Below, in pieces: positions 20,704 to 63,836 of a stretch of 64,000 nucleotides of DNA. The translations under genes were made by a program, and so were the position numbers. Positions within the stretch are counted from its first letter, which is position 1; the number at the start of each line of letters is the position of its first letter. Source of the stretch: Blepharisma stoltei ATCC 30299 (lineage: Eukaryota > Protista > Ciliophora); NCBI GenBank assembly GCA_965603825.1, contig CBFDEM010000058.1, positions 62,001-126,000 on the forward strand, in the 5' to 3' direction. Under the pieces are notes generated by a model. The model saw only the letters and a program-made list of their open reading frames with translations. It searched no databases and was not told the DNA's origin.

Positions 20704-23700
20704 ATGGACTTAAGTGAAAGTGAACTAATCAGTCGGATATCTCAAGCCAATTCTTTTAGAGTTGAAGGTGACATAGAAGAAATCTCAACTTTCAGCATCT
20801 ACACGATTTTGATGGGATTATATCCGAATAATCAAGTTTACATTATGATGGAAAGATTTTTTGGGAAGTCCCCTTTTGAATCTGACAGTGAAGATTCCCA
20901 ACTGTTATATGTAAAAGAAATTGAAAACTTGCTAAATCTACCAGGCGGCCCAATAAAACCAATTGTCTCCGTGCACAAAAACAAACCTGATGACAGTTGG
21001 GACTTTATGCTAATTTTGCCAAGTCAAGGCTTTATCCCGCCAAAAATATATTATAGAAATTCGAAGCACAAGCATCTCAAACTTCCACCTCTTATTTCAT
21101 TCTTATTAGAAAACAAGTTGAAGACTAATGAGATCGAAGAAAACAAGGAAAGCATCAGTGGAGGGATGCTAAAGACTTATCAAATTGTTGAAGAACAGGA
21201 TTTTCCAATAATGAACAGTGTGCAGCAAAATGAAGGGGGCTGGTGAGCTTTGTTTAGAATATTTCTAATTATATCTTCTAAATGTGAGGATTATCTTAAA
21301 AGAATGACATCATGGACTCCTACATTCTATGCTATGCAAAAATATTTCAAAGAAGCTCAGATAGATTTAAAACAAATTGGTTTACATTCAGATTGATCAG
21401 AGAGACAAGCTTGAGTAGAAGACCAAAAATTGCTTGTACTTCAAGCTTTAAATGAGAAAATTTCCATGTGAGAGGCAAACACAAATAAAGTGTGTGATGC
21501 CACTAATACATTTGCAGATCGATTAGAGTTTTGAAAGAGAATTATTAATACCTCAAAAGATAATGCCAATGCAACACCAAAAAAGCCATTTTCATATAAC
21601 AATATAGATACTTCGATACAAAAATCAAACGTTAAAATAAAGAAAAATTGAAAATTCTCTGCTTCAAAATTTACATTTAAAAATCTCATAAGAGATGAAA
21701 TAGTTTACGTAGATAAGACGCTATTTATAAAAGAAGTCTTAGACGATACAAGTGACGCTATTCTGATTACTAGGCCTAGAAGATGGGGGAAAAGCATAAA
21801 TATAGATATGCTAAAGACATTTTTGGGTAATAATGGGGACGAAAAAATAAATAAACAGAACAAGGCTTTGTTCACAGAGAAAAGAAAATTAATTATCAAC
21901 GGTTTTTCAAATAGTTCAGCTTCTCAGAAACTCGCAATTGCTACAGTAAATAATGGGGATTATGTTGAAATGCATGCTGGGAAATATCCTGTAATTTTTA
22001 TCAGCTTTCCGGAAGTGAGTATGGAAGTTGGTATAGATATTCGTGAAATAATACGAAAAAAATTTGGCGAGGCAATTCAATCAGCATATGTAGAGCACCG
22101 ATATGTTTTAGAAAAATTAATAGAGCGACTAAAAGATGGGTATGATGAAGATTTAGAGAAAGATATAAAAACATTTAGGAGCTTCTATAATGACGAGCCC
22201 AATGCAAATCTTGAAAAATCGATCAAATTTCTAAGTAGAGTACTTTGTGAATTTTATCATGAACAGGTTTTTATCTTAATAGATGAATATGATCGTCCAT
22301 TTAACCATTTATTTTCTACAGAGAGCTATAATACTGTCGTGAAATTTATGAGAGATTTGCTAAGTCCTGCAATTAAAGAGACTAAATATGCTAAAAAAGT
22401 AGTTATGACTGGTATTTTGAGATGCGCAAAAGACGATCTGTTTTCTGGGATAAATAATGTCTCGCTAAATAGCGTTACTAATCAAAGGTATTCGGAGTGT
22501 TTTGGCTTTACAGAGAGTGAAGTTGATAAAATTTTGAGAGAAGCCTCCGTTTGAAATACAGAAGAGGATTTGGAACTAAATAAAAGGCAAGTAGCTTCAT
22601 GATATGACGGCTATAACATTGGAGGACACAAAATTTACAATCCCTGGTCAATTATGAATTGCCTATATTATTCTCGAGAAGGGGAAGAAGACATATATAG
22701 AGCATATTGGATTGATACAGGTAGCCAGAATGAGCTTCAGTATTTGTTTAAAAATTTCACTTGCGAAGAAGAATTGTCTGAATTGCTGAGAACAGGATAC
22801 TTAATTTTAGAAAATCAATTACCGATTAAAATAAATATGGCAGATGTTTCAAATGACAAAGGACAATTTTTTTCACTTCTACTCCATTCAGGGTACTTGA
22901 CTCCATTCCAAGCGCCAATAGAAAAGAACTATGGAAGAAATATAATTCGCTCAGATTCGAGAAATAGAAAAGGGATTTATGTTATACCTAATAAAGAAGT
23001 GAAGAAATTCGTTTTTGATATTCTCATAAAAAATTGGGTTGAAAATCTAAATATTCCCAGTCCTGAACTATGCAAACTGATGAATCTTTTAAACGAAAAC
23101 CTTGAAAACACTTATGAATATATTTCGATTATCAAAAATCAAATTTTAAATCATTGGGGCGGTGACAATCATAAAGAAGTTGATTTTCAAAATCTAATAG
23201 GGTCGCCAAACCTTTATGCTGGAATTGCAGGTACAAATGAGCCGAGGCATAGATTATTAAGCGAGGTCAGAAATGAGGAAAATAAAAGATTAGATTCTAT
23301 GTATCTTCCTATAATCGGAAAAAGCACTTGTGTAGTGATTCATGAATATAAAAAGTTGTATAACACAGAACTTCCTCAAGTAAATAAGACAACTTTTGAA
23401 GCTATTATGCAAATCTATGACAAAGGTTACATGAATGCTGCATTAAGCATGTATGAATTAGATAATTACAATAATTATTACAGCCACATAATAGTGAGAG
23501 CTATGGTATTCTACCAATTGACTGCACAAACAAAGTGGAATTTAAATTTTATCTATCATATTCATGAAATAAGAGATGCGATAAAAATCAGAGATTATTT
23601 AAAGATGAATCAAAACGTGCTTGCAACCTGCAAAACAAAAAAAGAATTAAAAAATCTACTCAGGCTGATAGTTGGGCCAGAACAAGAAGAAGATATTTCT

Positions 23701-23778
23701 TATATTACTAAAGGCCTTAAAAGAAAACATTTGACTAACAAGAAGGGAACCAAACTTAAAAAAAGCGATAAGAATTAA
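20704..23778 (+). CDS. AAA-ATPase-like (PF09820-type) + PD-(D/E)XK nuclease (PDDEXK_9-type) protein, intact copy A, ~1024 aa
   Basis: Single frame with only TGA interruptions (gaps between track ORFs translated by hand). Motifs: YVDKTLFIKEVL, ITRPRRWGKS (Walker A), KYPVIFISF, VFILIDEYD (Walker B), VVMTGILR, FGFTESEV, (W)YDGY..IYNPWS, LLHSGYLT, IPNKEV; nuclease SEV..KRLD..IHEYKK..AIMQIYDKGY. Confidence 0.9.
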
Positions 23779-24746
23779 TATGCTAATAATTAAATTTTAG
23801 GTTAAAACATTATTAAAAATTCAAACTGTTTAGCATGAGATATTATATTGGTAATAGTTTAAATAAGATTCTAAATAATTTCTCAAAAGGTACGCTGACT
23901 TAAACCTAAAACTGGGTCTCAAACCTACAAAAAGCCGTTTAAAATTCCATTAGGACAGAGATCTTCTATTCCCATACCATATTTTTTTAACTAGAGCCCC
24001 ATTGTTTGGATCAAAGCTCTTTCAGTCCCCATAAGATTTGATCTATTAATTTCATTCAAATATTTTATCAGACAAAAATCTTTAGTCAAACATATCATTA
24101 GAAACACGCTGAAACCCTGAGTTTATAAAGCTCTCATTTCCTCAATTCTGCAGCCTGATTCGCTAAGGGACTTCATATTTTAAATAAAACTTAACTTATT
24201 ACAGTGCTCTAGCCGCCATATTGGTTCTTCCATCGCCAAGGATCCTGTTAAGAGCCAGGGATACTTGAATGAATTTGAAAGTCAGCTCTGGCACTGTTTT
24301 GCTTCTTTTTCGGTTTCTGATGCCATTGCCATCTGAAGTGATTTCTATGTCACTGTTTCCTCTTGCCAATTGGCTCCAGTTGCTAGTAAATATAAGTTGC
24401 CTTAGAGAAATTTAAAAATTCAGGCCAGCTTTAGATAAAAAAGAAAACTCGAAGCTGAGAGCTTAACTCCCAGTTTCATACAGGATTATTGTCCAATAGG
24501 ACCTTGAGTACTCAAACTTTGCTGAAATTATGCGTATCAAATTTTTCTACCTGTTCTTCCAATATGCAAAAAATATAATTTAGAAATTAGGTTTCGTTAG
24601 GCTCTGCAATCAACAGAATTGTTTACTTTGAATTTCTGCCTTGTTCCTTAGCTCCTAAAGGCTTAAGAGCTATAATTAATATGCACTTAAAACTTTCTAG
24701 CAGAAAAGCCATGTTTAATTCATTTTTTAAATCAATAATATTAAAA

Positions 24747-25354
24747 ATGGACTTAAGTGAGCGGGAGCTAATCAGACGGATATCTCAAGCCAATTCTTTA
24801 AGAGCTGAAGGTGACATAGAAGAAATCTCAACTTTCAGCATCTACACGATTTTGATGGGCTTATATCCGAATAATCAAGTTTACATTATGATGGAAAGAT
24901 TTTGTGGAAAGTCCCCTTTTGAATCTGACAGTGAAGATTCCCAACTGTTATATGTAAAAGCAATTGAAGACTTGCTATCTCTACCAGATAGCCAAATAAA
25001 ACCAATTGTCTCCGTGTACAAAAACCAACCTGAAATTGTTGGGACTTTATGCTAATTTTGCCAAGTCAAGGCTTAGAGCCGCCAAAAATATTTTATAGAA
25101 TTCGAAGCGCAGGCATCTCAAACTTCCGCCTCTTTATTTCATTCTTATTAGAAAACAAGTTGAAGGCTAATGAGATTGAAGAAAGCAAGGAAAACATCAG
25201 TGGAGGGATGCTAAAGACTTATCAAATTGTTGAAGAAATGAAAAATGAATGAGGCTGGTGGGCTTTGTTTAGAACGTTTCTAATTATAAGTTTTCAAGGT
25301 GATGATTGTCTTAAAAGAATGAAATCATGGACTCCTATATTCTCTGCTAATGCA
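24747..25354 (+). pseudogene. AAA-nuclease family copy B, frameshifted 5' fragment
   Basis: Near-identical to the start of copy A (MDLSERELI...); frameshift near 25040 and internal deletion near 25240; similarity stops at the TTAA at 25355-25358. Confidence 0.9.
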
Positions 25355-26700
25355 TTAATATAATGATAGTTATAAAAGCAATTTGGATGAAGGAGTATCT
25401 TAGATTCTGAACAAATATAAGGATTCCTTGATTTCTTTCCTTTTTGATAATAGCAGAAGATGCATTCTTTTGTATTTTCAATTTTTATTATCCAATCCAT
25501 TCCTGAAATTGCTTGATTTATTACAGTTTTATTTTGGTCGAACATATCAATACCTATCATAAACTGCCTATAGCGTTCAACAATTTCTGGGATTGCAATG
25601 ATTTCATCTTTGCCTCTTTTCTTTGTGATTATAGCTGATTTTCCTGAATTAGTTGCACAAACAACCATCCTTTTGTCATGCCAACAATATAAAAGTATCT
25701 GATATGCTCTTATAAACAGATATTCACTTTGATTTATTCCTGCAGTAATCTTTTTGAAGTACTTCGGAAGATATTTTCGATTTTGTTTTATTATGCCAGT
25801 GCATTCAATTCCAAATCCTTTCAATTTCAATAGCAATGGTATAGAATTATATCAGTTATCTATATAAAGATGAAAATTTTGATTTTCTAGTCCTCAAGCA
25901 AACGTTTTCAGGAGAGAATTCAGAAGATTCATTTTTCCCTGGGTAAATAATGAATCTATAAACATAACCGTTGCTTGAACCTGCTAAGACAAAATTTTTG
26001 AATCCTCATTTAGTTGGTTTCATTGGAAGATACTGTTTATGGAAACCAATCATAGATTCGTCAATCGCTATGCTTTGCCCTAGAAGATAATATTGTTGAG
26101 ATTTTGCTTCGATTTGGCTCATTAGTGGATTCAATTTTTCTAGTTTATCTTGTGAGTTTGATGAGTAGAAAGGATCAGAAAGATGAAAAATACTTCCAAT
26201 ATTTATAAATCTTTTGAGTCCTAAGGCCTTTGATATAAGACTACTCTTTCATAATCCATGGGTATTCCAATGCATATGATAATTTGGTTTCCTATCAATT
26301 CCCATCGCAATTATCACCCCAATGTACACTTCTAATTCAATCATATCTATTTCTTTGATTTTATTTGAACTTATTATTTTAGGAGTTTTTGATTCTTTCT
26401 CATCTTCTTTTGCTTCGTCCATTATCAGTTTGAGAATTCTTCATTCAATATATCAATTTCAGGGCTATTCAAATCTTTTTTCTGATAGCTTCTGAGTGTA
26501 ATATCTTCATGAATTAGTCAGTATTTCTCCCAAGACCTCACTATCAAAATAGATCTTGAAAAAGTCTATGGCCTTCATGAAGAATCAAATTCGCGTGAAT
26601 TTCTTCCAGAACTTGAGTTCAGTTGGTAGCTATTCATAGTAATTCCTTCTTCTTTAATTCAATGGAGAGCCGAAAGTTGATCTTCAATATAAATATTCAT
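25355..26700 (-). mobile_element. piggyBac-type transposase pseudogene (DDE_Tnp_1_7-like core plus Cys-rich tail)
   Basis: ELEVYIGVIIAMG, KRFINI..FHLSD, IAIDESM (D 26060-62), KQYLPMKPTK(W)GFK, LYIDN(W)YNS (D 25858-60), CTGIIKQNR, WHDKR, YRQFMIGIDMFDQ (D 25546-48), CIFC..YICSE..LHPNCF..YH. Frameshift near 25890; no terminal inverted repeats found. Confidence 0.9.
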
Positions 26701-26744
26701 CACTCTATTTATTTATTGCATAAAAGTTAAGTTGTGTACTATTG

Positions 26745-27250
26745 TCAGCATATATGCTGATTTGCACTAGAGATCGTTAATAATCACCTCAAAAGTTCAG
26801 TAATCTTTATCCTACTTTCTTCATATGCTTCACATTCTTCAATTGCATGTACTTCGTCTTCTACCGGTTTTCCACAGAATTTGCAATCAGGACTGTCGAT
26901 AATATGCCTAGTATATTTACATTGATTGGTGAAATTTGAGCCTGCCCTTTATCCAAAAATCATGCTGGTTGCTCCATTAATTGCTGAAGTGCCCCGCAAA
27001 TATAGCGGCAGTCCATCTTTTGGTTCGCTTCCTATCAGAATCCTGTATAGTCCGGTTGTTTTTCATGTTTCAGTTTACATTCTTTCTATTTTTTTTGTTG
27101 CATTAGATCTCATTTTTATCTTACTTCAATGATCATTGATACCATTATCAAGCAGCCCATATTTTTCTTGCACATTTCTGCATCTCATTTCCCATGTTAA
27201 TAATCATTGCTTATTAATTTGTAGTAAATCCTGGATGATCGCATTCCCTT
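26745..27250 (-). mobile_element. 3' fragment of a non-LTR retrotransposon ORF (CCHC zinc knuckle)
   Basis: Minus-strand frame reads ..RHIIDSPDCKFCGKPVEDEVHAIEECEAYEESR (26832-26885, C-x2-C-x8-H-x4-C), typical of the motif downstream of LINE reverse transcriptase; in-frame TAA stops upstream. Confidence 0.7.
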
Positions 27251-27258
27251 TAGTCTGT

Positions 27259-27644
27259 ATAAGTGATTCTATAAAAATAATAAATTATTTGAAAGTAAAT
27301 AAAGATAAGCTTAAAAAGTGCAATAATGAAAAGAATTTAAAAGATTTATTAGAGGGTATAGTAGAAGAAAAAGAACAAGAAGAAGAAAATGAAGAAGAAA
27401 ATGAAGAAGAAAATGAAGAAGAAAATGAAGAAGAAAATGAAGAAGAAAATGAAGAAGAAAATGAAGAAGAAAATGAAGAAGAAAATGAAGAAGAAAATGA
27501 AGAAGAAAATGAAGAAAAAGAAGAAAGAATATGGATCTGCTTACTTCAGGACAAAAAAGAAAGCATTTGATTAATGAGAATAAAAAGGAAAGCAAGCCTA
27601 AATTAAAAATAATGGAGGACAGTGAAGAAAGCAATGAGAATTAA
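27259..27644 (+). pseudogene. AAA-nuclease family C-terminal fragment with expanded acidic repeat
   Basis: DSIKIINYLKVNKDKLKKCNNEKNLKDLLEGIV matches copy A DAIKIRDYLKMNQNVLATCKTKKELKNLLRLIV; frameshifted KRKHL tail; same 3' flank as copy A. Confidence 0.85.
27379..27510 (+). repeat. perfect 12-bp tandem repeat (GAAGAAGAAAAT) x11
   Basis: Directly visible; encodes (EEEN)11 in the family reading frame. Confidence 0.97.
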
Positions 27645-27745: not shown

Positions 27746-29592
27746 ATGGATTTAAATGAGAGTGAGCTAATCAGTCGGATATCTCAAGCCAATTCTTTAA
27801 GAGTTGAAGGTGACATAGAAGAAATCTCAACTTTCAGCATCTACAAGATTTATATCCGAATAATCAAGTTTCAATTGTGATGGAAATATTTTGTGGAAAG
27901 TCCCCTTTTGAATCTGACAGTGAAGATTCCCAGTTATTATATGTAAAAGAAATTGAAGACTTGCTAAATCTACTAGAAGGCCGAATAAAACCAATTGTCT
28001 CAGTGTAAAAAAACCAGCCTGAAAACAGTTGGGACTTTATGCTAATTTTGCTAAGTCAAGGCTTAGAGCCGCCAAAAATATTTTATAGAAATTCGAAGCA
28101 CGAGCATCTCAAACTTCCACCTCTTATTGCATACTTGTTAGAAAAAAAACTGAAAGTTAATGGAATTGAAGAAAACAAGGAAAACATCATTGGAGGGATT
28201 CTAACGCTTTCTGATATCATTCAAGAGCAGGATTTTACAAATATGGAAAGTATTCAGCAAAATGAAGGGGGCTGGTGAGCTTTGTTTAGAACATTTCTAA
28301 TTATATATTCGAAAAGTGATGATTATTTTAAAAGAATGGTATCATGGACTCCTCCATTCTATGCTGTGCAAAAACATTTCAAAGAAGTTCAGATTGATTT
28401 GAACAAAAACGATTATGAGCCTGATTTAATTGACTGACCAAATTGACTAGGAGCGCAAAGATTGCTTACAAAAATCAAACATTAAAATAAAGAAAAATTG
28501 GAAATTCGCTGGTTCAAAATCTATATTTGAAAATCTCATAATAGATGAAATAGTTTACGTAGATAAGACGCTATTTATAAAAGAAGTCTTAGATGATACA
28601 AATGATGTAATTTTGATTACTAGACCTAGAAGATAGGGCAAAAGTCTGAATATAGGCATGCTAAAGATATTTTTTGTAATAATGGAGACGAAAAAATAAA
28701 CTCAAAAAAAGGCTTTGTTCACAGAGAAAAGAAAATCAACTATCAACGGTTTTTCAAATAGTTCAGATCCTCAGAAACTCGCAATTGCTACCTAAATAAT
28801 GGGGATTATGTTGAAATGCATGCTGGGAAATATCCTGTAATTTTTATAAGCTTTCCGGAAGTGAGAAATGAAGCTGGTATAGATATTCATGAAGTAATAC
28901 ACAAAAATTTTGGCGACGCAATTCACTCAGCATACTGAGACCACAAATATGTTTTAGAAAAATTAAAAGAGCGACTAAAAGATGGGTATGATGAAGATTT
29001 AGAGAAAGATATAAAAACATTTAGGAGCTTCTATCATAATAAGCCCAATTCAGATCTTAAAATATCGATCCAATTTCTAAGTAGAATTTTATCACGAAAA
29101 AGTTTTTATCTTAATAGATGAGTATGATCGCCCATTTAACCATTTATATTCTACAGAGAGCTATAGTACTGTCATACAATTTATGAGAGATATGCTAAGT
29201 CTTGCAATTAAAGATAACACTCAATATGTTAAAAAAGCAGTTATGACTGGAATTTTGAGATGTCCAAAAGACGATCTGTTTCCTGGAATGAATAATGTTT
29301 CGTTAAATTGTGTTGTGGATCGACAGTTTTCAGAGTATTATGGCTTTACTGAGAGTGAAGTTTATAAGATTTTAAAAGCATCCGTTTGAAATACAATAGA
29401 GGTTTTGGGACTGAATAGAAAACGAATGGCTTCATGATATGATGGCTATAACATTGGAGGGCTCAAAATATACAATCCCTGGTCAATTATGAATTGCCTA
29501 TATCGCGCTCAAGATGGCGAAAATAACATATATAAAGATTACTGGATTGATACAGGAAGTGATCATGAACTTAATAAAGCAATGAGAATTAA
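27746..29592 (+). pseudogene. AAA-nuclease family copy C (frameshifts, nonsense codons, nuclease half deleted)
   Basis: Homologous to copy A from MDLNESELISR to YWIDTGS; Walker A broken by TAG (agaagatagggc near 28633); then jumps straight to the family stop and 3' flank near 29577. Confidence 0.92.
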
Positions 29593-30330
29593 TATATTAA
29601 TAACTAAAATTTTAGTTTAAACATTATTAAAGCTTCAAGCTACTTACATGAGATCTTTTATTGGTAAATAGTTTAATAAGAGCTTAAATATTTAATGCCT
29701 TCTCTATTAAAGACTGTTAATAGCATTTTTATTATATCAAAATTATAATTTCTATCATCTAAGTCAAATTTTAATGAATTTATCTATAATAATTATTTGT
29801 AGTTATTCTGCTATAAATATCTATATAATATTAAATTTTTTGCCTAAAATATAAAATCTTGAGCAAGCAAAATCCATATAATAAACAACTTTAATATATA
29901 CTTATAATGAAAAAGCTAATTATAGCAGATTTGCAGCACAATTTCATAACTGAATTATTTAGCTTAAAGATAAAATTACTCTAAAAATTTTACCTAAAAT
30001 TTAAGCCTCCACAGAGTCATATAACCTTAGTCTTCCATTTTTGTTCAACAACTAATCGAATTTTCTATAGAGCTGAAAACAAATAGAATCTAAAATGCAC
30101 TGGAATTCAAATTTTTTAATAAAATTATAGCAAATAGTATTATAAGTCGAGCTTTATGGGTATACAATTTTTAATTTTAAATAGGCTTTTGCTAATTTTT
30201 GACGGTTTTTAAACAAAAAGGGAGGGTGGTTATAATGAATTATTGATATGAAACTATTAGTGACAAAATTATTTTATCGTTTCTCATTCATAAATAAGAA
30301 AGGTTAAAATAACAGCTAGTCTTAATAATA

Positions 30331-31242: not shown

Positions 31243-31622
31243 AATAAGATTTCATTTTTTGAAAATTTGAAATATAAATGGAAAATTTTAGATTTCATCA
31301 GCTATTACCCTCTTAAATTTAGTAAGGAAAAAAGAAAATTAATTCATAAATTTTATTATATTGATTTTAAAGTGTTTTTATAAAATCTTGGTTCAAAATA
31401 TCGATCAAATTTAATTATGCGTCTTATGAATTATTTCTTTACTTTATTTTTATTTAGCATTTGAAAATAATAAGTTTTTGGAGTGTAGAAATAAAGCTTG
31501 GCATTTATAGGTCTTAAAATTTTCAATAAAATCTAAAATTCCTTTTTTTGAATTTCAAATAAAATTTATCTCATTATATGAGTAGCTTTAATAAACTAAA
31601 ATATTATTTATTTAAATCACCA

Positions 31623-34127
31623 TTAATTAAGCTCATTTCGCTGATATGGATAATAATTCCCTGGATTTTCTAAAATATTTCTTTCTTCGCTATACTCATC
31701 TTCCATCGGTGCATCCATAAACGGATTTCCTGCCACCGGATTAATTACACTTCCCCCCATCACACTCGAAAACGGATTTTCCGCAATCGTCCTATACTGC
31801 CCACTTTCCAAATCTACCATCTGATACGCATAATTTCTCATATTATTCGCAGCGCTCATCACATTTGAAAATCTCGTCTCCATTTTCTTCTTTTCCGCTG
31901 TGCCTTTTCTATGTTCTACCAATTTCAGTCACTCTTTCCAGCCTTCTTTTGCTAATAGCGGGTTATTTCTCATATAATCCTCATTAAAACGTACTGCATT
32001 TTCTTCATAGTCATTTCTTTCATCTACATTAATTCCTTCTTTTTTTCTTTTTATTTTTCCTTTAATTCCACATAAAAACCTTATAGGAGACACAAAAAAT
32101 AAGGCAACTAATAAAAAGGCAGCGATTGGGATCAAAATATTGTGGTAGTCTTCTGATTTTAAAAAAAATAAAAAGGTGCAGTTTGAAGCCTATATAAAGT
32201 TTACAGAGTAAGCTAAAATAAAGAGAGGGATCCATTTGAGCATATTGTTAGACATCCCTTTGCCAAAGTTACGTGGCCGTGAATGCCGACGAAGGAGCAT
32301 AAGTTTGTCAGTCCAGTATTGCAGAAAAACTGATATAAAGCCGATAAGGAAACAAAGAGGGAATAATGGAGCAAAAATAAAGCAGATTATTAATGTCACC
32401 AAAATATTTGCATAACGCTGAGCCATGTCCACTTCAGGGTTTTCCCACAGTTTGTTAGCCTCGATTTGAGTTATCCCTATAATGCCTCTTCTTGCAAGTT
32501 TTTTTACTTGGCGTCTCTTATGGACTTTATATAAATACAAAGGAGAAAAAATATAGGTCAATGGGGATGAAATCCCGCTGACTATTAATAAAAATAAAAC
32601 ATCATTGACTAAGCCATATGGCAAAAACCAGTCATCGATTTTCCCTGAATTTACCCAGATAAGGATACCTACAGAGTTAAGCACCATTGCAGTCACTAAT
32701 TTGTTGGTAACTGCTCTATGATAATGCGTCCAGGTTATATGTTTTTCAGTGCTGGAAAAAATTCTGACGACGATAGCGAGAAAACGGTTTATGATAAGAA
32801 TACAAACAGAGAGTCCAAAGGAGTATAAACGGACTTGCAGCAGGTCTTGGTAAGTTCTTTCGTCTTTTGGCTTGTTTTCATAGTCTTTGTAATAGTTTCT
32901 TTGATATTGCTTAGTTATATACACTAAAATAAAGCAGCCTATAAGGAGAGCTAATGTTCATAAGGTTGTAATTAACCTTCTTAAGTATTTTTGGCAAGAA
33001 GTTGCGCTTAGATTTTCCCATATGATATCTGATGGTTCTGGAGCTTGCTCTACGTGTAGCCTGACGTTTTTAAATGTAAAAGGGCCATCATAGCACAGCA
33101 TGCATAAACAGCAGAAAATCCTTGTTGATGGATTTATTGCCCAATAGTCAACTACTAATTTAGCGTCTTCTTCTTTCGTAAATGTCACAAAGGCATAATG
33201 TGTCTGATTATAACTTTCCTTTGCCTTCAGCTCAAACTTGTTTATCCTTTTCTCCAAACTGTCAATTTTCTGTTTTATTACCCCTTCCTGTGGATAATAC
33301 GCTACATATTTTTTACATTTACAACAAAACCCACCTTTTTTGGGATAATTCCCATGATGCTTTTTCTGATAGTCCTGCACAAATAGTAATAGCCCTTTAA
33401 GTTTTGCGTGGTCTCTGGTATCTTTTACGTACTGATTAATATCATAAGCAACGCTTACACTTTCTACAGTAGTCGGAAAACCGAAGTATTGGGTCTGTTT
33501 TTCAAAAAATGCTTTGAGGTCTTGGCTGTTATAACTGTTCCTGAGGTTTTTAACCCAAACTGTGTAGTCTGAAGGAGTTATATGGTTTTTGTCGATTTTT
33601 TGGATCATTTTTGTGAGGCTTTTTCTGAGGAAAAAGAAAAAAACTACTAGAACAACGCTATTTGCGGCATGGAGGATTCCTTGGATTTCTGGGATGTCTT
33701 CATCTTTTCCAAAGCCACCTAAGGAGGCATCAATATATCAGCTTTCAGAGCCTTTACCTCAGTCACCAGAGTGCCCAGCATTATAGTCTTGGTAAGCACA
33801 ATAAGCTCCAGCAAAAATGAAACTCCAAAGCAGCCAAAGAATGACTCTTGAAACAAAGTAAAAATATAAAGGAACGCCGATGCCTAAATCCCCAAGCTTT
33901 TCTATTGAGCAGCAAAGTGAATAATAAGGGGCGTCCTATATCTCAATTACAATTGGTAAACTGCAGCAAGGGCATAGTTTACTTTTTTCAGTGACTTTAT
34001 AAGACCTTAGGTTTCTTGCTTTGCTTGCTTTCTGAATTTATTTTACTTGGTGAATTCGTGCTAATTTAAGATCTGCTTTCTTTTGGTTTGTTATCAACGG
34101 GTTTTCAACTTCAAATGATTCTTCCAT
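31623..34127 (-). CDS. OSCA/TMEM63 (CSC1)-like multi-pass channel, paralog 2
   Basis: Same motifs and same three intron positions as paralog 1 (34032-34046, 33936-33950, 32190-32204). Confidence 0.85.
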
Positions 34128-47791: not shown

Positions 47792-48226
47792 AGAAGAAGC
47801 GTGGTTCCAATTAAAATGTTGACATAAAATGTTATGTTAATATTTAAATTTTTATATAAGATAATATAATTACCCGAGCAAAATCTAATAGTTAAATTAT
47901 TTCAAAATAATATTATTTCTTAATCTATTTAAGAAAATTATGAAAATTAGGGCATTTTATAGGTAAATTATTAAAAATTACATCAAGGGAATTTCACTAA
48001 TTGCTGAGCATTCATCTGTTTTAAAAGTTTTTATTTATACTAGTAACCATCATTTTGTGAGGAGAATCATTATTTTATTAAGATCTGATAAATAAAATAA
48101 CGAATTTAATAATTTTTAACCTAGATAATCAAAAATATGACAATCAGAAAAAGTTTCTTTAATTTTCATTTTTATCAGAAAATGGTTATATTATCATTTT
48201 ATATCTAAATATTTCATTGTTTATAC

Positions 48227-49402
48227 TTACAATCTTTTAGAATTAAAAAAGCTTTGGCAATTCATTTCAAAACTTGAAAAAGCGATCATTATTGCAGTCA
48301 AATTATCAGAGCTTCTTTTTCTCATACTTTCAGATAGTACTGTTTCCACTCCTTTTCTGCAGGCTTGCGATACATTTTCTTCATCAACTGTGCTTTTCCA
48401 GACTGTTTCAATTGCATCTTTTGAAGACAAAACGTCAAAAATTCCATCACAGCCCATCAGAATAAAGTCGTGATCTTTTTTAATCTTTAAAGTCCTAATA
48501 TCAGGCTGTGAACTGATAACGTTAGGAATCCCTCCAAATTCTGCTAACTTAGCATTTACATCTCCAATTGTTCTGCTTACATTTAGCCCACCTGGAATAA
48601 CTCTGCATGATTTAAAATCTTTAGTTGAACAAAATACTTGTCCACCTGCATTTTTAATTCGATTTTGTTCAATTTCATTAGTAGGCACGTGATCTCTAGA
48701 TAGAGAATAGACCTCTTTGCCTCGTTCTGTGCTCAAAATTGCCCTAGAGTCACCTATATTAGCAATATAGCACATTTTCCCAATAATAAGCACTATAAGA
48801 ACGCATGAGCCTGACTTATCGCCTGTAGATTTTGCAAGATCTATAAATTCAGACTCAGCTTTCGCAAGTCCATGAAAAATAGCTATTTTCGGTAACGAGG
48901 GAAAATGTGGGTCACCTACAATATAATGATGCAGATTATCTCTTAAGAAATTAGAGCACAAATGGCCTCCATGCCCATCATATAAGCCAAAAAAGGAGCA
49001 GTCAGGTCATTTTTGTTCCCCACTTGAAACTTGATTTTTTATTTTTAGTATAATAACAGCTTTATCTTCGTTATAAGTACGGGAAATTCCTTGATGAGTA
49101 TTAACAGCATAAGCTTTTACTTTCCCACACGAATTGTTAGAAATGTTGGATGGGAGTAGTCTTGGGATGGATATTTCTATGGAGCTGCTGGTCTCAGCTG
49201 GACTGTGGTCTTCACTTTTATGCCTAAAAGTCGTAATTTTTGGTAATCGTAAAGTATCGTAACCTGAAACTAGCTGAGAAAATGTAGTCTTTTTGACTGA
49301 TTCCACTGGTGAAAGGAGAGCTGGAGATAATTCCCCTTTCGTCTTTAGGAAAGGGAACACTGAATAAGAGTTAGATTTTCTATTGTGCTTGGTATTGTTC
49401 AT
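48227..49402 (-). CDS. protein phosphatase 2C, tandem paralog 2
   Basis: Same PP2C motifs; TGA 49007-09 read as Trp joins the two track ORFs. Confidence 0.93.
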
Positions 49403-50199
49403 TCAATTAGTTTGAATTTTAATAATTATTGATTTGGCCATCAAAGAATAACATAAAAAAAAGAAACTAACTTTTACTGAATATTTTAGATTTTAGTATA
49501 GAAGAAATAATTTTTCATTGCTATCGAGCTCGAAAATTATTATTAAAAATTAAATAATTGTAGTAAAATGCAAATTTCTAGAAAATTCCACCCGATCCAC
49601 TTTTCCTAATAATGGTATATTCTTTAATATAAGTTAATATGTCCTGATGTGATTATATAAATATTATTTAGCTAAAAGAATCTCGTTATTTTGCAAAATC
49701 GTTTACTTCTGGATAGATTTATAGTCTAGTATAATCAAAAGTGGCGATAGAAAATATCAATTTTATTTACTTTAATAGGAAAGGCTGTAGAATTATAAAT
49801 TCTTTGCATTAATTTGTTTATTGCTCGCTTTGTGACATAATTCTTGAGATAAATAAAAGCTGCTTTGATCAATTTACGCAGAGAAATCAATTTTCTTACC
49901 GTAATCCAAGTAATTCTGTAGATTTGCCATAGATATTTCCTAAGGAAATATCAAATAACTAATGAGAGTACGTAGCCTTTAACTATATTTTAAAAACATT
50001 AACAAATAGATAAAATAGTAATTAGCATGCTTTGCAAAGGTTTTAAGTTCCAGTTATTTTTATTTTTCTAATCAAATTCTTACAAAAAAATGCTTCGGCC
50101 TTATTTAATAGACAAAATCGGGTAATTTATTTACCTTAATTAATTCTTTTTATATTTTATAACAGCTTCGTCATTTTATAAATAAAAAGAGTGACCTAT

Positions 50200-53983: not shown

Positions 53984-54014
<31 letters not shown>

Positions 54015-54019: not shown

Positions 54020-54048
54020 TTTTTAAAAATTTAAAAGATTACTATTAA

Positions 54049-56724
54049 TTAGGCACACAGTTTCCTTAACACATATGGCAAAATTCCTCCATTCTTGAAA
54101 TACTCTACTTCTACATCTGTATCAATCCTCGCAATTACCTTAAATTCAGTCCCTTTATCAGTTTTAACAGTCAATTCTTCTTTTACCATAATGTCTCCTC
54201 CATTTAAATTAATTGTGAATTTTTCCTTTCCTGATAAGCCAAGCGACTCAGCGTTTTCTCCTTCTTTAAACTGTAAAGGCAAAACCCCCATCCCTACCAA
54301 ATTCGACCTATGTATCCTTTCATAACTTTCTGCAATCACTGCTCTGATACCTAATAAAAGTGTCCCTTTAGCAGCCCAGTCCCTCGAAGACCCGCTGCCG
54401 TATTCTTTTCCAGCCAAAATTACCAAATTTTCATTATTTTTTCTATATTCTTCACTGACGTCAAAAACTGACATTTCTTGGCCTGATGGAAAATGAATGG
54501 TGCTTGGGCCAGGTTTTTCGACAAGCTGATTAATAAGCCTTATATTGGCAAAAGTCCCTCGTTTCATTATTTCGTCATTTCCTCTTCTAGCGCCATAAGT
54601 ATTAAAATCAGGCTGTGAAACCCCTTTTTCTTGTAAAAACCTAGCTGCTGGAGAAGTTTTTCCGATATTCCCAGCAGGGGAAATGTGGTCAGTAGTAATA
54701 GAGTCTCCTAGTTTTAATAAACAATAAGCCTCAGTTATATCAGGGATTGCAGGCAGCTCACGGGTTAAGTTTTGGAAATACGGCGGGTTATGGATATAAG
54801 TGTTATCAGTCCAATTGTACATTTCACCAGTCGGTGCTTGCAGCTGGTTCCATTTTTCAGTGCCTTGTGCAATTTTTCCATATATTTCTTTAAACATTTG
54901 TGGCTTTATAACGGTATTTGTCAAGGCTTGCATATCTTTTCGGCTTGGCCATACGTCTCTTAAAAATACATCAGTCCCATTTACAGTGCCCAGGGGTTCT
55001 TTTTCAAAATCAATGTCCATTCTTCCAGCCAGGGCATATGCGACTACTAGTGGTGGAGAGGCTAAATAATTAGCCCGAGTAAAAGGATTGACCCTGCCTT
55101 CAAAATTTCTGTTTCCTGATAAGACAGCTGCAGCTACTAAATCGCCTTTTGTAATAGCGTCTATAACTTCTTCGTCTAAATCCCCACTGTTGCCAATACA
55201 AGTCATACACCCGTATCCTGCATGGTAAAATCCGAGCTCATTTAAATAAGGCTGGACACCTGCAGCTTCAAGGTATTTACTGACGACGCCTGAGCCTGGG
55301 GAAAGGCTGGTTTTTATATATGGTTTTACTTTTAAGCCTTTTTCGACTGCATTTTTAGCTAGAACTCCGGCGGCTAACATAACGTCAGGGTTAGAGGTAT
55401 TTGTACAAGACGTGATGGCTGCTATGACGACTGAGCCGTTATTTATGGTATATTCGTGGCCTTTGTAGGTAAAATTTTGAGGATTTGAGGCAGATTTTAA
55501 GCCGAAACCTTTAAAACTGACAGGGCTGGTTAAGCAAGATTTGAAGTTCTGTTTGGCAAGAGAGAGTGGGACTTTGTCTTGTGGCCGCTTTGGTCCTGCA
55601 ATACAAGGCTGGACTTCAGAGAGATCTAATTCCATGATATCTGAATATTTAGGATCTTTTCCGGTATAGTCTCTAAAAAGTCCTTGGGCTTTTAAATACG
55701 CACTGATATATTGGATTTTTTCTGGGTCTCGGCCAGTTTGTTCTAAATATTTCAAAGTTTGGTCATCTGCAGGGAAAAATCCCATGGTAGCTCCATATTC
55801 AGGAGCCATATTAGCGACTGTCGCTTTGTCAGCTAAACTTAGCTTTCTGCAGCCTTCTCCAAAGAACTCCACAAATTTACCGACCACGCCTTTTTTCCTT
55901 AACATTTGTGTAATTGTAAGAACTAAATCGGTTGAAGTAGCTTCTTCAGGTAATTTTCCAGTCAGCTTGAAGCCGATAACTTGAGGCAAAACCATTGATA
56001 TTGGCTGCCCTAACATGACAGCTTCAGCTTCAATGCCTCCAACTCCCCATCCGACGATTCCTAATCCATTTATCATCGTAGTATGACTATCAGTTCCAAC
56101 CAATGAATCTGGATACAAAATTCCATCATCATTAAAAACTCCTCTTGCCAAATACTCCAAATTGACTTGATGCACAATTCCAGACCCCGGTGGCACAATC
56201 TGCAGGTTTTTAAATGCATTCTGCCCCCATTTCAAGAATTCAAACCTATCCCGATTCCTCCTAAACTCCATTTCTTCATTTATCCTCAATGCTTCTGCCG
56301 ATCTGCTCGCATCTACCTGTACAGAGTGATCAATTACCAAATCAACAGGACACAGTGGGTTAATCAGCCCAGGCTCTTTGCCTAATTTTACAGTGGCATC
56401 CCTCATAGCTGCAAGATCTACAACAGCTGGGACTCCTGTGAAATCTTGTAAAACAACTCGGGCAGGCTTAAAAGGAATTTCCACATCTTGTTTGCTTTTA
56501 TTGGTCCAATCCAGAATATTCTCTACGTCTGACCCTTTAATTGAAAATTCATCACAATTTCGAACAGAAGATTCTAATAGAACGCGGATGCAGTAGGGGA
56601 GTTCGAGAAGGCGAGAATCTTGTAAAGCGGTTAAGGAGAAGTATTGAAAACGTGTAGGAAGGTTGAGGTCTTGAAGAACGTGCTTGAAAGGGTTTTTTGA
56701 CAAAGAAGAAATCCTTCGCAGCAT
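54049..56724 (-). CDS. aconitate hydratase (AcnA/IRP1 type) with mitochondrial-like presequence
   Basis: [78 protein letters not shown]; N-terminus [10 protein letters not shown]. Confidence 0.97.
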
Positions 56725-56911: not shown

Positions 56912-59900
56912 TTATTCTTCCTCAATTCCTTTAATTGATTCCGGTTTAGGTCTCTTTGTTTTCACATCTGTGTCAATCAAAGACTTTCTTTTTAGGTTTA
57001 TCTCAACTAGCCCCATCTCTTGTTCAATTTGTTTTTCTTCTTCATTGATTGGACCTACAATGCTTTCTAACAATTCATCTAAATCCGCTTCATTTTTGCA
57101 ATTTTTAAGCTGTATTTTGTTTAATTTCAAAGCATTTCTTATCTCTATAGCATCGTGAATTCTGTGTACACGAAACATTATTTTGAGGTTCCAATTTGGA
57201 TAGCCCTCCATTTTATAAAATACCATCACTCTAACAACTATGTGAGTATAATAGCTACAATAACTATTAGTTTCATACATATTTAATGCATCGTCCATAT
57301 ATCCTTTTTCATAAATTTGAATGAGAGCATTGAAAGTTGTTTTTTCTACTTCATAAGTTGTTGTGCTAATTAACTTTTTGTGTTCGTGTACGACTATGCA
57401 TGCACTCCTATTTCTGATTGGAAGATATATCGCTTCTGAGTTCTCTTTATTAATGACCTTGCTTAATAGTGTATGCCTTGGCTCTTCTGCATGTGGAATC
57501 CCCGTAATAAGGCTATGTCACTCTATCAGAATTTGAAAATCAATTTCATAATGATCATCATTATCAAAATAATTCAAAATTTCATTTTTTATTATCGATG
57601 CATATCTCTCTGATTTTTCAAGATTTTCGTTTAGACCACTTATCAATTCGCTTAGTTCAAAATCAGGGATTTTATTTTCCAGATTCCCAAGTCAACTTTC
57701 TATGAGAATATGAAAAACGAATTTTTTGACTTCTCTATTGGGCATGACATAAATTCTTTGTTTGTTTATTGATTCTGAATAAACTATGCGCCTTTCAGTG
57801 TTCTCTTTTTTTGACTTATGAAGGGGAGTCAAGTATCCTGAATGGAGTAGGAGTGCAAAAAACTGTTTTTTATTATTTGAAACTCTTGCTATATTAACTC
57901 TAGTTGGTAATTCGCTTTCTAAAGTTAAATATCCTGTTCTTAGTAATTCAGACAATTCTACTTTGCAAGTGAAATTTTTAAGCAAACGCTTAAGCTCATA
58001 ATCGTTTCCTCTATCAATCCAATAATCTCTAAATATGTTTTCTTCTCCAGATTGAGCTGCAAAAAAGCAATTCATAATTGACCAGGGATTGTAAATTTTG
58101 AGTCCTCCACTGCTATAGCCGTCATATCATGAAGCTATTTGCCTTTTATTTAGTTCCAAATCCTCTTCTGTATTTCAAACTGATGCTTCTCTTAAAATTT
58201 TATCAACTTCACTCTCTGTAAAGCCATAATACTCTGAAAAATATCGATCCACAACACTATTTACCATAAGATTATTCAGGCTAGGCAAATCCCATGTTAA
58301 AACTCCAGTAATAATTGCCTTTTCAACATAATCAGCATTGTATTGTATTCAGTAGGTAAGCATATTGTCCATAATTTGCACAATTGTATCATAGCTGTCC
58401 TTAGAGAATGAACAATTTAATGGACGATCATACTCATCTATTAATATAAAAACTTTTTTTTGATGAAATTTATAAAGCACTTTACTTAGAAATTGTATTG
58501 ATACAAGAAGCTCTGAATTTGGATCATTATTGTAGAACTTATAAAACATTTCTATTTCTTTCGCTAGCTGTTTGTCATAATTTTCTGCTAGGCGCCTTTT
58601 TAGTTCATTAACAACATATTCGTGCTCCTTGAATGCATAGCTAATAGCACTGCCAAAACATTCATGTATTTCTTCTTCAATATTTTCATATATTTCACAT
58701 TCCAAAAAACTAAGAAAAATGACAGGATATTTTCTGGCATGATTTTCTATATATTTCCCATTGTCTACAGTTGCAATTGCTAGCTTCTGAGAATCAGAAC
58801 TATTTGAAAGACCATTGATAATTGATTTTCTTTCCTCTGTGAACAAAGCCTTTTTCATTGAGTTTATTCTTTCATCTTTTTCATCACTCAAAAATGTCTT
58901 TAGCATGTCTATATTTAAGCTTTTACCCCATCCTCGAGGTCTAGTGATCAGAATAGCATAATCTGTATCATCTAAGACTTTTTTTATAAATAGTGTCTTA
59001 TCTACATAAACTATTTCATCTCTTATGATATCTTCAAATGAAAATGTTGAACAAGCGAATTCTCAATTTTTCTTTATTTTAATGTTTGAGTCTTGTTTGG
59101 AAGTGTCTATAATTTGGCATGAAAAAGGCTTTCTTGGTGTTATATCCAAGCTGTCGCTTGAGGTATTCATAATTTTAGTTCAAAATTCTAATTGATATGC
59201 TATTGTATTAGTGACATCACACACTTTATTTGTGTTTGCCTCTCACTTGGAAATATCCTCATTTAAAGTTTGGAGTACAAGCAATTTTTGATCTTCCATT
59301 CAAGCTTGTCGGTTTGATCGATCTGGAGGTAAATCAATTCTGCTTAACTCTATCCGCTTTTCTTTGAAGTACTTCTGCATTTCATAGAATGTATAATTCC
59401 ATGATGGCATTAATCTGAGAAAATCCTCATTTTTAAAAAGTATAATTAGAATTGCTCTAAACAAAGCCCACCAGCCCCCTTTATTTTGATGCACACTGTC
59501 CATATTTGAAAGATCTTCTTGTGCAACAATTTGAAAAGGCTTTAGCATCCCTCCAATAATGTTTTCCTTGTTTTCTTCAATCTCATTAGCTTTCAATTTA
59601 TTTTTAAATAAGAATTCAATGAGAGGTGGGAGTTTGAGATGCTCGTGCTTCGAATTTCTATAATATATTTTTGGCGGGACACGGTCTTGGCTTGGCAAAA
59701 TTACAAGCAAGTCCCAACTGCCTTCAAAGTGGTTTTTGTACACAGAGACAATTGAGTTCATTCGGCCATCCGACTGGCCTAGTAAGTTTTCAATTCTTTT
59801 TACATATAATAACTGGGAATCTTCACTGCCAGATTCAAAAGGGGACTTCCCAAAAAATCTCTCCATCAAAATTGAAACTTGATTACTCGGATATAGTCAC

Positions 59901-60010
59901 CCCAAAATTTTGTAAATGCTGAAATCTGAGATTTCTTGTACTTCTCCTTCAGGTTTTAAAAAATTGGCAAAAATTATCCGACCGATTAACTCTTTATCAC
60001 TTAAACCCAT
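56912..60010 (-). CDS. AAA-ATPase-like + PD-(D/E)XK-like protein, intact copy D, ~1032 aa
   Basis: ATG at 60010; all gaps between track ORFs stay in frame with only TGA. YVDKTLF, ITRPRGWGKS, ILIDEYD, (W)YDGY..IYNPWS, LLHSGYLT, VHEHKK..ALIQIYEKGY. Confidence 0.88.
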
Positions 60011-60720: not shown

Positions 60721-60786
60721 TTTGGCGCGCCCTACTAACTCAAAAATATTAAAATCTTAGATGCTAATGGCCATCTTTTAATTACT

Positions 60787-63700
60787 TTATTCTTCCTCAA
60801 TTCCTTTAATTGATTCCGGTTTAGGTCCCTTTGTTTTCACATCTGTGTCAATCAAAGACTTTCTTTTTAGGTTTATCTCAACTAGCCCCATCTCTTGTTC
60901 AATTTGTTTTTCTTCTTCATTGATTGGACCTACAATGCTTTCTAACAATTCGTCTAAATCCACTTCATTTTTGCAATTTTTAAGCTATATTTTATTAAAT
61001 TTCAAAGCATTTCTTATTTTTATAGCATCGTGAAATTTGTGTACACGAAACATTACTTTGAGGTTCCAATTTGGATAGCCCTCCATTTTATAAAATACCA
61101 TCGCTCTAACAACTATGTGAGTATAATAACTAAAATAACTATTAGTTTCATACATATATAATGCTTCGTCCATATATCTTTTTTCATAAATTTGAATGAG
61201 AGCATTGAAAGTTGTTTTTTCTACCATATAAGTGGTTCTGCTACTTAACTCTATATATTCGTGTACGACTATGCATGTACTCCTATTTCTGATTGGAAGA
61301 TATATCGCTTCTGAGTTCTCTTTATTAATGACCTCTTTTCATAGTGTATGCCTTGGCTGTCCTGCACGTGAAATTCCAGTAATAAGGAAATGCCACTCTA
61401 TCAGAGTTTGAAAATCAATTTCATAATGATCATCATTTTCAAAATAATTCAAAATTTCATTTTTTATTATTGATGCATATCTCTCTGATTTTTCAAGATT
61501 TTCGTTTAGACCACTTATCAATTCCCTTAGTTTCAAACCAGGGATTTTATTTCCTAGATTCTCAAGTCAATTTTCTATGAGAGTATCAAAAACGAATTTT
61601 TTGACTTCTATATTGGGCATGACATAAATTCATTCGTTTATTGATTCTCAAAGAGAAATGTACCTTTCAGTGTTCTCATTTTTTTGGCTTATGAAGGAGA
61701 GTCAAGTATCCTAAATGGAGGAGGAGTGCAAAAAACTGTTTTTTATTATTTGAAACTCTTGTTATATTTACTGCAGTCGGCAATTCGCTTTCTAAAGCTA
61801 TATATCCTTTTCTTAGTAACTCATACAATTGATTTTCGCAATTGAAATTTTTAAGTTCATAATCGCTTTCTCTATCAATCCAATAATCTCTATATATGTT
61901 TTCTTCTCCAGATTGAGCTGCAAAAAAGCAATTCATAATTGACCAGGGATTGTAAATGCTGAGTTCTCCACTTCTATAGCCGTCATATCAAGAAGCTATT
62001 TGCCTTTTATTTAGTTCAAAATCCTCTTCTGTATTTCAAACTGAGGCTTCTCTTAAAATTTTATCAACTTCACTCTCTGTAAAGCCATAATACTCTGAAA
62101 ACTGTTGATCCACAACACTATTTACCATAAAATTATTTAGACAAGGCAAACCGCATTTTAAAACTCCAGTAATAATTGTTTTTTCAACATAATCAGCATT
62201 GTCTTTTATTCAGTAGGTAAGTATACTGTCCATAGTTTGCACAATTGTATCATAGCTATCCTTGGAAAATAAACAATTTAATGGACGATCATACTCATCT
62301 ATTAATAGAAAAATTTTTTTTTGATGAAATTTATAAAGCACTTCACTTAGAAATTGTATCGATGTAAGAAGCTCTGAATTTGGATCATTATTGTAGAACT
62401 AATAAAACATTTCTATTTCTTTCGCTAGCTGTTCATCATAATTTTCTGCTAGGCGCCTTTTTAGTTCATTAACAACATATTCGTGCTCCTTGAATGCATC
62501 GCTAATGGCACTGCCGAAACATTCATGTATTGCTTCTCCAATATTTTCTTTGATTTCACATTCCAAAAAACTAAGAAAAATTACAGGATATTTTCTGGCA
62601 TGATTTTCTATATATTTCCCATTGTCTACAGTTGCAATTGCTAGCTTCTGAGAATCTGAACTATTTGAAAGACCATTGATAATTGATTTTCTTTCCTCTG
62701 TGAACAAAGCCTTTTTCATTGAGTTTATTCTTTCATCTTTTTCATCACTTAAAAATGTCCTAAGCATGTTTATATTTAGGCTTTTGCCCATCCTCGAGGT
62801 CTAGTGATCAGAATAGCATAATTCGTATCATCTAAGACTTCTTTTATAAATAGCGTCTTATCTACGTAAACATTTTCATCTCTTATGAGATCTTCAAATG
62901 AAAGTGCTGAATAAGCGAATTCTCAATTTTTCTTTATTTTAATGTCTGAGTTTTGTATGAGAGTGCATATTTCGTAGCATGAAAGAAGTTTTCTTGGTAT
63001 TATTATAAAGCTGTCGCTTGAGGTATTCATAATTTTTGATCAAAATTCTAATCGATTTGCAATTGCATTAGTGGCATCACACGCTTTATTTGTGTTTGCC
63101 TCTCACTTGGAAATATCCTCATTTAAAGTTTGGAGTACAAACAATTTTTGGTCTTCTACTCAAGCTTGTCGGTTTGATCGATCTGGAGGTAAATCAATTT
63201 TGTTTAACTCTATCCGCTTTTCTTTGAAATACTTCTGCATTTCATAGAATGTATAATTCCATGATGGCATTAATCTGAGAAAATCCTCACTTTTGAAAAG
63301 TATTATTACAACTGCTCTAAACAAAGCCCACCAGCCCCCTTATTTTGATCCACACTGTCCATATTTGTAACGTTTTTAAAAGGCTTTAGCATCCCTCCAA
63401 TAATGTTTTCCTTGTTTTCTTCGATCTCATTAGTTTTCAACTTGTTTTTAAATAAGAATTCAATGAGAAGTGGGAGTTTAAGATGTTCGTGCTTCGAATT
63501 TCTATAATATATTTGACTTGGCAAAATTACAACGATGTCCCAACTGCCTTCAGATTGGTTTTTGTACACAGAGACAATTGGTTTCATTCGGCTATTTGGC
63601 TGGTATAGCAAGTTTTCAATTCTTTTTACATATAATAACTGGGAATCTTCACTACCAGATTCAAAAGGGGACTTCCCAAAAAATCTCTCCATCACAATTG

Positions 63701-63836
63701 AAACTTGATTATTCGGATATAGTCTCTCCAAAGTCTTGTAAATACTGAAATCGGAGATTTCTTGCACTTTTCCGCAAGCTTTTGAAAAATTGGCAAAAGC
63801 TATCCGACGTATTAGCTCTTTATCACTTAAATCCAT
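60787..63836 (-). pseudogene. AAA-nuclease family copy E, near-full-length pseudogene closely related to copy D
   Basis: Collinear with copy D; 1-nt deletion near 63340, TAG at 62399-401, further frameshifts near 62320, 61680 and 61340. Confidence 0.92.

Follow-up and report, generated by a model that had tools for sequence, protein, structure and literature searches.

DUF1703 proteins occur widely and have multiplied in obligate intracellular bacteria, and to our knowledge no function has been assigned to them. In the literature that we searched, no DUF1703-type family is described from ciliates. Here we analyze such a family in a 64,000-nucleotide stretch of Blepharisma stoltei ATCC 30299 (GCA_965603825.1, contig CBFDEM010000058.1, positions 62,001 to 126,000 of the forward strand; hereafter the window), which holds two open copies, A and B, and three decayed copies, F, C and D, of a gene for an AAA+ ATPase joined to a predicted PD-(D/E)XK nuclease. 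An earlier note on this DNA, made from its letters alone, had taken the family to be mainly bacterial, to occur in toxins of arthropod endosymbionts and to include a Medea-associated gene of Tribolium. The literature supports this background, with expansions in arthropod endosymbionts and the homolog in Tribolium (PMC6387759).

The closest described systems are the bacterial and archaeal DUF1703 proteins, which combine PF09820 with PF08011 (PDDEXK_9; Knizewski et al. 2007, PMC1913061). They are defined by an arginine-rich Walker A motif, a DEYD Walker B motif, a YNP motif and a helical linker (PMC1913061). In the ciliate genes, ATPase, helical linker and nuclease follow one another in the same colinear order, and the arginine-rich Walker A, DEYD Walker B, YNP motif and nuclease motifs I-IV are common to both. 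In contrast to the bacterial and archaeal proteins, they carry a header of ~316 residues, insertions within the ATPase and behind nuclease motif IV, and 70-110 additional residues at the C-terminus. They also use TGA for tryptophan and leave the PF08011 model unmatched.

DUF1703 expansions in intracellular bacteria have been reported from Cardinium cCpun (25 paralogs), Rickettsia and Simkania, with recombination among the Cardinium paralogs (PMC6387759). Both those expansions and the present family are multi-copy, consist of divergent paralogs that recombine, probably so in the present family, and are associated with intracellular life. The bacterial ones, however, sit in bacterial genomes as short forms of ~550 residues, some with signal peptides, whereas the copies described here reside in the host nucleus and have none. 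A further DUF1703 homolog is associated with the Medea element of Tribolium, where, in the account that PMC6387759 gives of Lorenzen et al. 2008, it lies within a composite Tc1 transposon with a drive phenotype. Like the ciliate genes, it is a bacterial-type DUF1703 gene in a eukaryotic nuclear genome. The copies in B. stoltei are without a transposon context, and our comparison with Tribolium is with that published description.

The ciliate version is a variant of the known DUF1703 kind, lengthened at both ends and adapted to the genetic code of its host. We favor the reading, at a probability of roughly 0.7, that an old horizontal acquisition is now a birth-and-death family encoding an ATP-gated nuclease with a role in genetic conflict.

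Open copies and domain architecture

Two intact, intronless copies of ~1,030 residues had been noted; both lie at the positions given for them and are open when TGA is read as sense (Table 1). Copy A holds eight TGA and nine TGG codons in frame and zero internal TAA or TAG, and copy B holds ten TGA and nine TGG, with TGA as its sole internal stops. As we estimate a chance rate of TAA or TAG of ~5-6% per codon at 33% GC, open frames of ~1,000 codons cannot be due to chance. Six TGA positions are common to A and B, each copy has one further TGA that is opposite a TGG of its counterpart, and one TGA encodes the tryptophan of the WY(D/N)GY motif that is conserved in bacterial relatives. Copies A and B depend on the host code in which TGA is tryptophan, as had been proposed. 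The public proteins P0119 and P0150 agree with A and B translated directly, apart from a W at each TGA; therefore both copies are already annotated as intronless full-length genes, under the automatic database label 'AAA-ATPase-like domain'. The genes had been called hidden, which holds for scans in the standard code, as these miss such genes, but not for the public annotation. In our own translations each TGA was marked X, and whole-protein analyses used P0119 and P0150.

The assignment of the ATPase to PF09820 is confirmed by hidden Markov model searches. A 300-residue TGA-free piece of A matched nearly the whole model at E 5e-34 (118.3 bits), B matched at E 1e-24 (88 bits) and the full-length P0119 scored 110 bits, all above the gathering cut-off of 26.1 bits. 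Both Walker motifs are intact in A; B keeps the DEYD Walker B and lacks one arginine of Walker A.

In structure comparisons with Foldseek, the predicted ATPase matched BrxC, Cdc6/Orc1, CED-4, MalT and NLRC4 at E 1e-4 to 3e-3, and BrxC, Cdc6, Orc1, CED-4, MalT and PAB2304 at E 1e-4 to 9e-4 with a probability of 0.99-1.0. This places it at fold level with the ORC/Cdc6-STAND clade of AAA+ ATPases, in agreement with PMC1913061. Members of that clade fused to effectors (BrxC of BREX, CED-4/Apaf-1, NLRC4, MalT) are its best structural matches and would share with it the logic of an ATP switch coupled to an effector. The likeness does not go beyond the fold, with E 1e-4 to 3e-3 and a TM-score, on the query, of 0.15-0.21, and unlike those proteins the copies here have neither a repeat-type sensor domain nor a PADLOC match. 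A viral fold library gave weak matches to giant-virus ATPases and nothing else, sequence searches of the Protein Data Bank (PDB) with single pieces and profiles gave no match, and neither did NCBIfam.

The C-terminal domain had been read as a PD-(D/E)XK nuclease, with PF08011 as the model to try, and this stands in part: it is homologous to PF08011-bearing proteins and keeps their catalytic residues, but the PF08011 model itself does not match, and for P0119 and P0150 the Pfam annotation computed beforehand gives PF09820 only. In an alignment with natural relatives, the span from ATPase to nuclease is colinear with bacterial PF09820+PF08011 proteins, and the C-terminal piece aligns into the PF08011 span of the Babeliales protein P0012 (BLASTP E 3e-18). 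The nuclease residues E, D, E-x-K and Q sit in columns with at least 90% conservation, and all are retained in A. Among 62 near-invariant positions (at least 90% conserved among bacterial short forms), A keeps 56 and B keeps 50. Judged from its sequence, copy A has kept the predicted ATP-binding and nuclease residues.

AlphaFold modeled the C-terminal piece of A with a predicted local distance difference test score (pLDDT) of 80.9, and its core shows the topology of a PD-(D/E)XK fold at high confidence. For the whole protein A the pLDDT is 75, with values mostly of 82-98 from ATPase to nuclease and above 90 in the ATPase domain. Nearly all top Foldseek matches of the C-terminal part are PD-(D/E)XK nucleases, although all are weak and none reaches E 1e-3; the nuclease domains of Wolbachia CidB and CinB come first, and SwaI, HincII, Cas4-like, R2 and MGME1 also appear.

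The header, in contrast to the ATPase-to-nuclease span, has a pLDDT of 24-72. It matches nothing in Pfam (E up to 5), NCBIfam, PADLOC or the PDB, and searches of 1.84 billion representative proteins and 5.8 billion clusters found only copies of its own locus. Pairwise comparison with the N-termini of the long forms P0123 and P0124 gave a faint similarity (E ~1e-4), and comparison with the nuclease region gave none (hhalign probability 0.3%). A metagenome scan returned 80 loci at ~26-34% identity, none carrying the header; two of these, L038 and L054, come from human-gut metagenomes and were taken as bacterial contigs. By hydropathy, A has no signal peptide, transmembrane segment or hydrophobic segment. 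A short basic tail containing LKRK is common to A and B and may serve as a nuclear-targeting signal.

Crinkler-type headers are ubiquitin-like and carry the motif LxLFLAK. In the account of Zhang et al. 2016 contained in PMC5289972, Crinkler (CR) effectors comprise a header, a P-loop nucleoside triphosphatase (NTPase), a helix-turn-helix domain and a restriction endonuclease (REase). The ciliate proteins resemble them in that an NTPase and a REase-fold domain come after a variable N-terminal header, and a prokaryotic origin has been proposed for the Crinkler modules too. On this ground the family might be a delivered effector used against prey, competitors or symbionts. The three-part layout (PMC5289972), the bacterial relatives that are predicted to be secreted or bear ankyrin repeats, and the basic LKRK tail of A and B would all suit such a role. 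The header, however, matches no Crinkler or other Pfam family and has no confident fold, the protein lacks a signal peptide or hydrophobic segment, and the NTPase is of the PF09820 type, which appears to be a different family from that of the Crinklers. The Crinkler layout is valid as an analogy, membership is not supported, and we consider delivery as an effector highly improbable.

Table 1 Features of the ATPase-nuclease locus, in positions of the window.
Feature	Positions	Strand	Remarks
Copy A	20704-23778	+	Intact; 1,024 codons + TAA; public protein P0119
Copy A header, aa 1-316	20704-21651	+	Orphan N-terminal region; low-confidence fold
Copy A AAA-ATPase_like domain, aa 317-633	21652-22602	+	Walker A RPRRWGKS, Walker B IDEYD; PF09820
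Copy A YNPWS hairpin and helical linker, aa 634-810	22603-23133	+	From alignment with relatives and predicted structure
Copy A PD-(D/E)XK nuclease domain (predicted), aa 811-955	23134-23568	+	Conserved E, D, ExK, Q
Copy A C-terminal helical extension and basic tail, aa 956-1024 + stop	23569-23778	+	Absent from bacterial short forms
Copy B	56912-60010	-	Open frame; 1,032 codons + TAA; public protein P0150
A upstream flank	20491-20703	+	213 bp; recurs upstream of F
A downstream flank	23779-23880	+	~100 bp; repeated behind both F and C
Copy F	24747-27644	+	Decayed; 5' piece and 3' remnant with 3' flank; center replaced by unrelated DNA
Copy C	27746-29593	+	Decayed; ~86% nucleotide identity to A
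Copy D	60787-63836	-	Full-length, decayed tandem duplicate of B; 90-92% nucleotide identity
PiggyBac-type (DDE_Tnp_1_7) transposase remnant	25219-26464	-	Nested in F on the opposite strand; outside the repeat unit
Repeat Y	19863-20109	+	Direct repeat, 81% identical to Y'; nucleotide self-comparison
Repeat Y'	31543-31796	+	Partner of Y; nucleotide self-comparison

Tandem duplication, decay and selection

The copies form two clusters in opposite orientation, as had been noticed before, ~33 kb apart with host genes between them. We located the decayed copies by translated search and nucleotide self-comparison. Four decayed pieces had been counted; the decay is real, but it concerns three copies, as F had been counted as two pieces. 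The 5' part of F is 85-91% identical to A at the nucleotide level and carries four frameshifting indels, one in-frame indel and one premature stop. Copy C has seven frameshifting indels, two of which are large deletions, two in-frame indels and two premature stops, and two of its pieces are publicly annotated as the short proteins P0117 and P0118. Copy D has three frameshifting indels, four in-frame indels and two premature stops. A short tandem repeat rich in GAA/AAG lies at 27367-27533, in the 3' remnant of F.

The flanks of A recur with its duplicates (Table 1), and the match between D and B takes in ~170 bp upstream and reaches the window edge. As the flanks are duplicated with the gene, the repeat unit consists of gene and spacers and was copied in place. 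The family has therefore grown by local tandem segmental duplication followed by decay, which is the birth-and-death turnover that had been suspected. Its description as expanding is overstated, since only two of the five copies are still alive, and one of these, B, departs from positions that are invariant in the family.

The mode of duplication bears on whether the gene moves by itself. PD-(D/E)XK nucleases serve some transposons, and a transposon-like unit that employs its own nuclease as the cutting enzyme is conceivable here. NTPase+REase modules have been linked to prokaryotic mobile elements (PMC5289972), and a PiggyBac-type remnant lies inside the cluster, matching PF13843 at E 6.5e-11 (25294-25833) and the piggyBat transposase at E 1.2e-3 and holding many in-frame TGA codons. 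It occurs, however, in one decayed copy only and on the opposite strand. B. stoltei has eight somatic PiggyBac homologs, some of them short and barely expressed (PMC9942806), and the remnant may be one of these or an unlisted relic. No terminal inverted repeats bracket any copy, where only chance-level AT-rich inverted matches were found; adjacent copies that share gene flanks follow the pattern of segmental duplication; and the header search of 5.8 billion proteins found this locus alone. With neither terminal inverted repeats nor a transposase in the unit, and with its copies not dispersed, nothing points to self-mobilization, and the idea, which the earlier note had raised, is scarcely credible.

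A selfish toxin or toxin-antidote pair of the Medea type, whose nuclease would harm cells or progeny without the locus, had also been considered. The DUF1703 homolog reported in the Medea element of Tribolium (PMC6387759), the turnover of copies and the elevated ratio of nonsynonymous to synonymous divergence (dN/dS) fit such a system. Yet the repeat unit and spacers hold no conserved second open reading frame that could serve as an antidote, only chance-sized frames of 50-59 codons, and the copies are local tandem duplicates rather than a spreading element. We therefore regard a Medea-type toxin as very unlikely, although the lack of a second frame bears on a two-gene pair and not on a single-gene system.

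At the protein level A and B are 60% identical, and their nucleotide identity is a mosaic, 79-84% over the first 1.2 kb and then 62-73% except for one bin of 87%. Synonymous divergence runs from 0.31 in the header up to 1.4 in the nuclease. Such a mosaic suggests recombination between the clusters, which may be compared with the Cardinium paralogs. Between A and B the dN/dS is 0.49 overall and 0.27 in the nuclease; between B and D it is 0.56, and between A and the dead copy F it is 0.93.

Non-functional leftovers of an ancient transfer that are on their way to pseudogenes would likewise show three dead copies out of five, the departure of B at 12 of 62 invariant positions and an overall dN/dS of 0.5. 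The family also uses TGA for a greater share of its tryptophan codons than the host genes do (18/36 versus 32/108, p = 0.04) and has a lower GC content at third codon positions (0.27-0.28 versus 0.33), which was counted for such a drift; the base composition is otherwise host-like and gives no sign of a recent arrival. What speaks against relics is that A retains all catalytic and nucleotide-binding residues in an open frame of 1,024 codons, that the nuclease dN/dS is 0.27, as against 0.93 for the truly dead copy, and that divergent full-length paralogs persist elsewhere in the genome. We find an origin as mere relics distinctly unlikely.

Relatives, origin and possible role

At least two further divergent paralogs, P0124 (1,013 aa) and P0002 (559 aa), are encoded on other contigs of B. 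stoltei, and ENA and JGI proteins of 800-1,030 residues are also of the long form. Database entries with fungal (Spiromyces) and chrysophyte (Chromulina) labels exist for the family. Among 185,579 prokaryotic species genomes, the best match came from a contig binned to Candidatus Midichloriaceae (L081, CAZJPD010000027.1). Its protein P0162 (504-5978, + strand) has 1,824 residues; it contains PF09820 and the region past the nuclease, and carries ankyrin repeats at its C-terminus. It shares 33% identity with A across residues 380-977 and 58% with the ENA relative P0003. P0162 is thus a long form that includes the region beyond the nuclease, as the ciliate proteins do, but it differs from them in its ankyrin repeats, its N-terminus and its use of the standard genetic code. 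Its N-terminus gave a sub-threshold match to the Ulp1 protease family (Peptidase_C48; E 0.004, 17.4 bits versus a cut-off of 20.7), and the domain combination of P0162 recalls the CidB-type factors of Wolbachia. Close relatives among bacteria were also found in Tisiphia, a Rickettsia endosymbiont, Wolbachia, unclassified alphaproteobacterial bins and Babeliales/Dependentiae. In a neighbor-joining tree the long forms grouped beside an alphaproteobacterial clade with weak support.

A long-form relative on another contig (L075, JACCDV010898447.1, 3-1448, + strand) has 19 in-frame TAA or TAG codons in its matched stretch and is free of TGA over 482 codons. The TAA and TAG codons face glutamate most often in relatives, followed by lysine and glutamine. 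As TAA and TAG stand in frame where TGA is absent, the contig is best read as using a second ciliate genetic code in which TAA and TAG are sense.

Of the horizontal acquisition proposed earlier, the part that stands is that the nearest bacterial relatives are intracellular bacteria; the acquisition itself is what these relationships would suggest. In the reading that we favor, this is a small nuclear gene family of the DUF1703 class, in which an ORC/Cdc6- or STAND-like AAA+ ATPase is joined to a predicted PD-(D/E)XK nuclease; the ciliate version is lengthened by the ~316-residue orphan header and by a helical, basic C-terminal extension. An old horizontal transfer, either to intracellular bacteria or from them, would account for the lineage. 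From the retained residues and from what is established for AAA+ switch ATPases with a fused effector, the product would be soluble and a nuclease gated by ATP, with cleavage licensed when the ATPase switches or assembles in response to nucleotide. The expansions in intracellular bacteria (PMC6387759), the tandem birth and death of copies, the moderate dN/dS and the recombination mosaic suggest that it serves in genetic conflict and not in housekeeping; it might, for example, defend the cell against intracellular bacteria or foreign DNA. There is good support for the domain identity and for how the family evolves; the conflict role is inferred only.

Several results weigh against this reading. 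The PF08011 model remained unmatched by the C-terminal pieces of A and B up to E = 5, and the Foldseek support for the nuclease fold is weak (best E 7.8e-3). PADLOC-DB 2.0 gave no component-model match for pieces of A or for the bacterial relatives. Copy B departs at 12 of the 62 near-invariant positions, one Walker A arginine among them, and the first acidic residue of its nuclease motif, an aspartate, is conservatively replaced by a different acidic residue. As B is altered in both Walker A and the nuclease motif, only A is clearly competent. The overall dN/dS of ~0.5 between A and B also fits relaxed constraint. As for the origin, the tree is rough: the clade of ciliate-type sequences that includes the Midichloriaceae sequence was recovered in 76/100, its sister relation to the alphaproteobacterial sequences is poorly supported, and the contig binned to Midichloriaceae could be mis-binned.

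A bolder form of the favored reading is that ciliates and Rickettsiales-type endosymbionts exchanged a long-form DUF1703 gene, which in the ciliate nucleus would have become a family of immune or conflict receptors resembling the nucleotide-binding leucine-rich repeat receptors, with the header as a variable module for sensing or targeting. We think this unlikely. If it is true, the family would persist across ciliate lineages with differing codes, one with TGA as tryptophan and one, that of L075, with TAA and TAG as sense. 

On the favored reading itself, the naturalized nuclear version in a ciliate offers a datable case of gene exchange between a protist and intracellular bacteria, for which the recoding to the host code, the added end modules and the tandem turnover are the evidence. 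With data on expression and distribution, the locus would also be a tractable place to ask what the pairing of ATPase and nuclease is for.

Setting of the window

The window has a GC content of ~33%, and many of its long frames are open only with TGA as sense. In B. stoltei UGA encodes tryptophan, and the somatic genome is gene-dense with introns of 15-16 bp (PMC9942806). The window is most probably a somatic contig of this species. Its eukaryotic genes encode a DNA polymerase delta with a C4 zinc finger, an aconitase, an IQ-motif protein, a carbonic anhydrase, two CSC1/PHM7-like channel paralogs, an aromatic amino-acid hydroxylase, ribosomal protein S13, a porin, a calcium-dependent kinase, a second kinase and two PP2C paralogs. 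Such host genes flank both ATPase-nuclease clusters and also lie between them. The use of TGA for tryptophan varies strongly from gene to gene: TGA accounts for zero of eight tryptophan codons in the DNA polymerase delta gene (34538-37603, + strand) and zero of seven in the aconitase gene (54049-56724, - strand), but TGA is in free use in other genes of the window.

The CSC1/PHM7-like paralogs at 17567-20109 and 31543-34079 flank the cluster of A, F and C and are 65-67% identical at the nucleotide level. Direct repeats of ~250 bp (Y and Y' in Table 1) bracket the whole of this cluster together with the hydroxylase gene, and the block order of the CSC1/PHM7-like genes and these repeats is at odds with a simple tandem duplication. 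The PP2C phosphatase paralogs at 46562-47836 and 48227-49492, both on the - strand, lie in tandem with 72.5% nucleotide identity, so local tandem duplication in this region is not peculiar to the ATPase-nuclease family.

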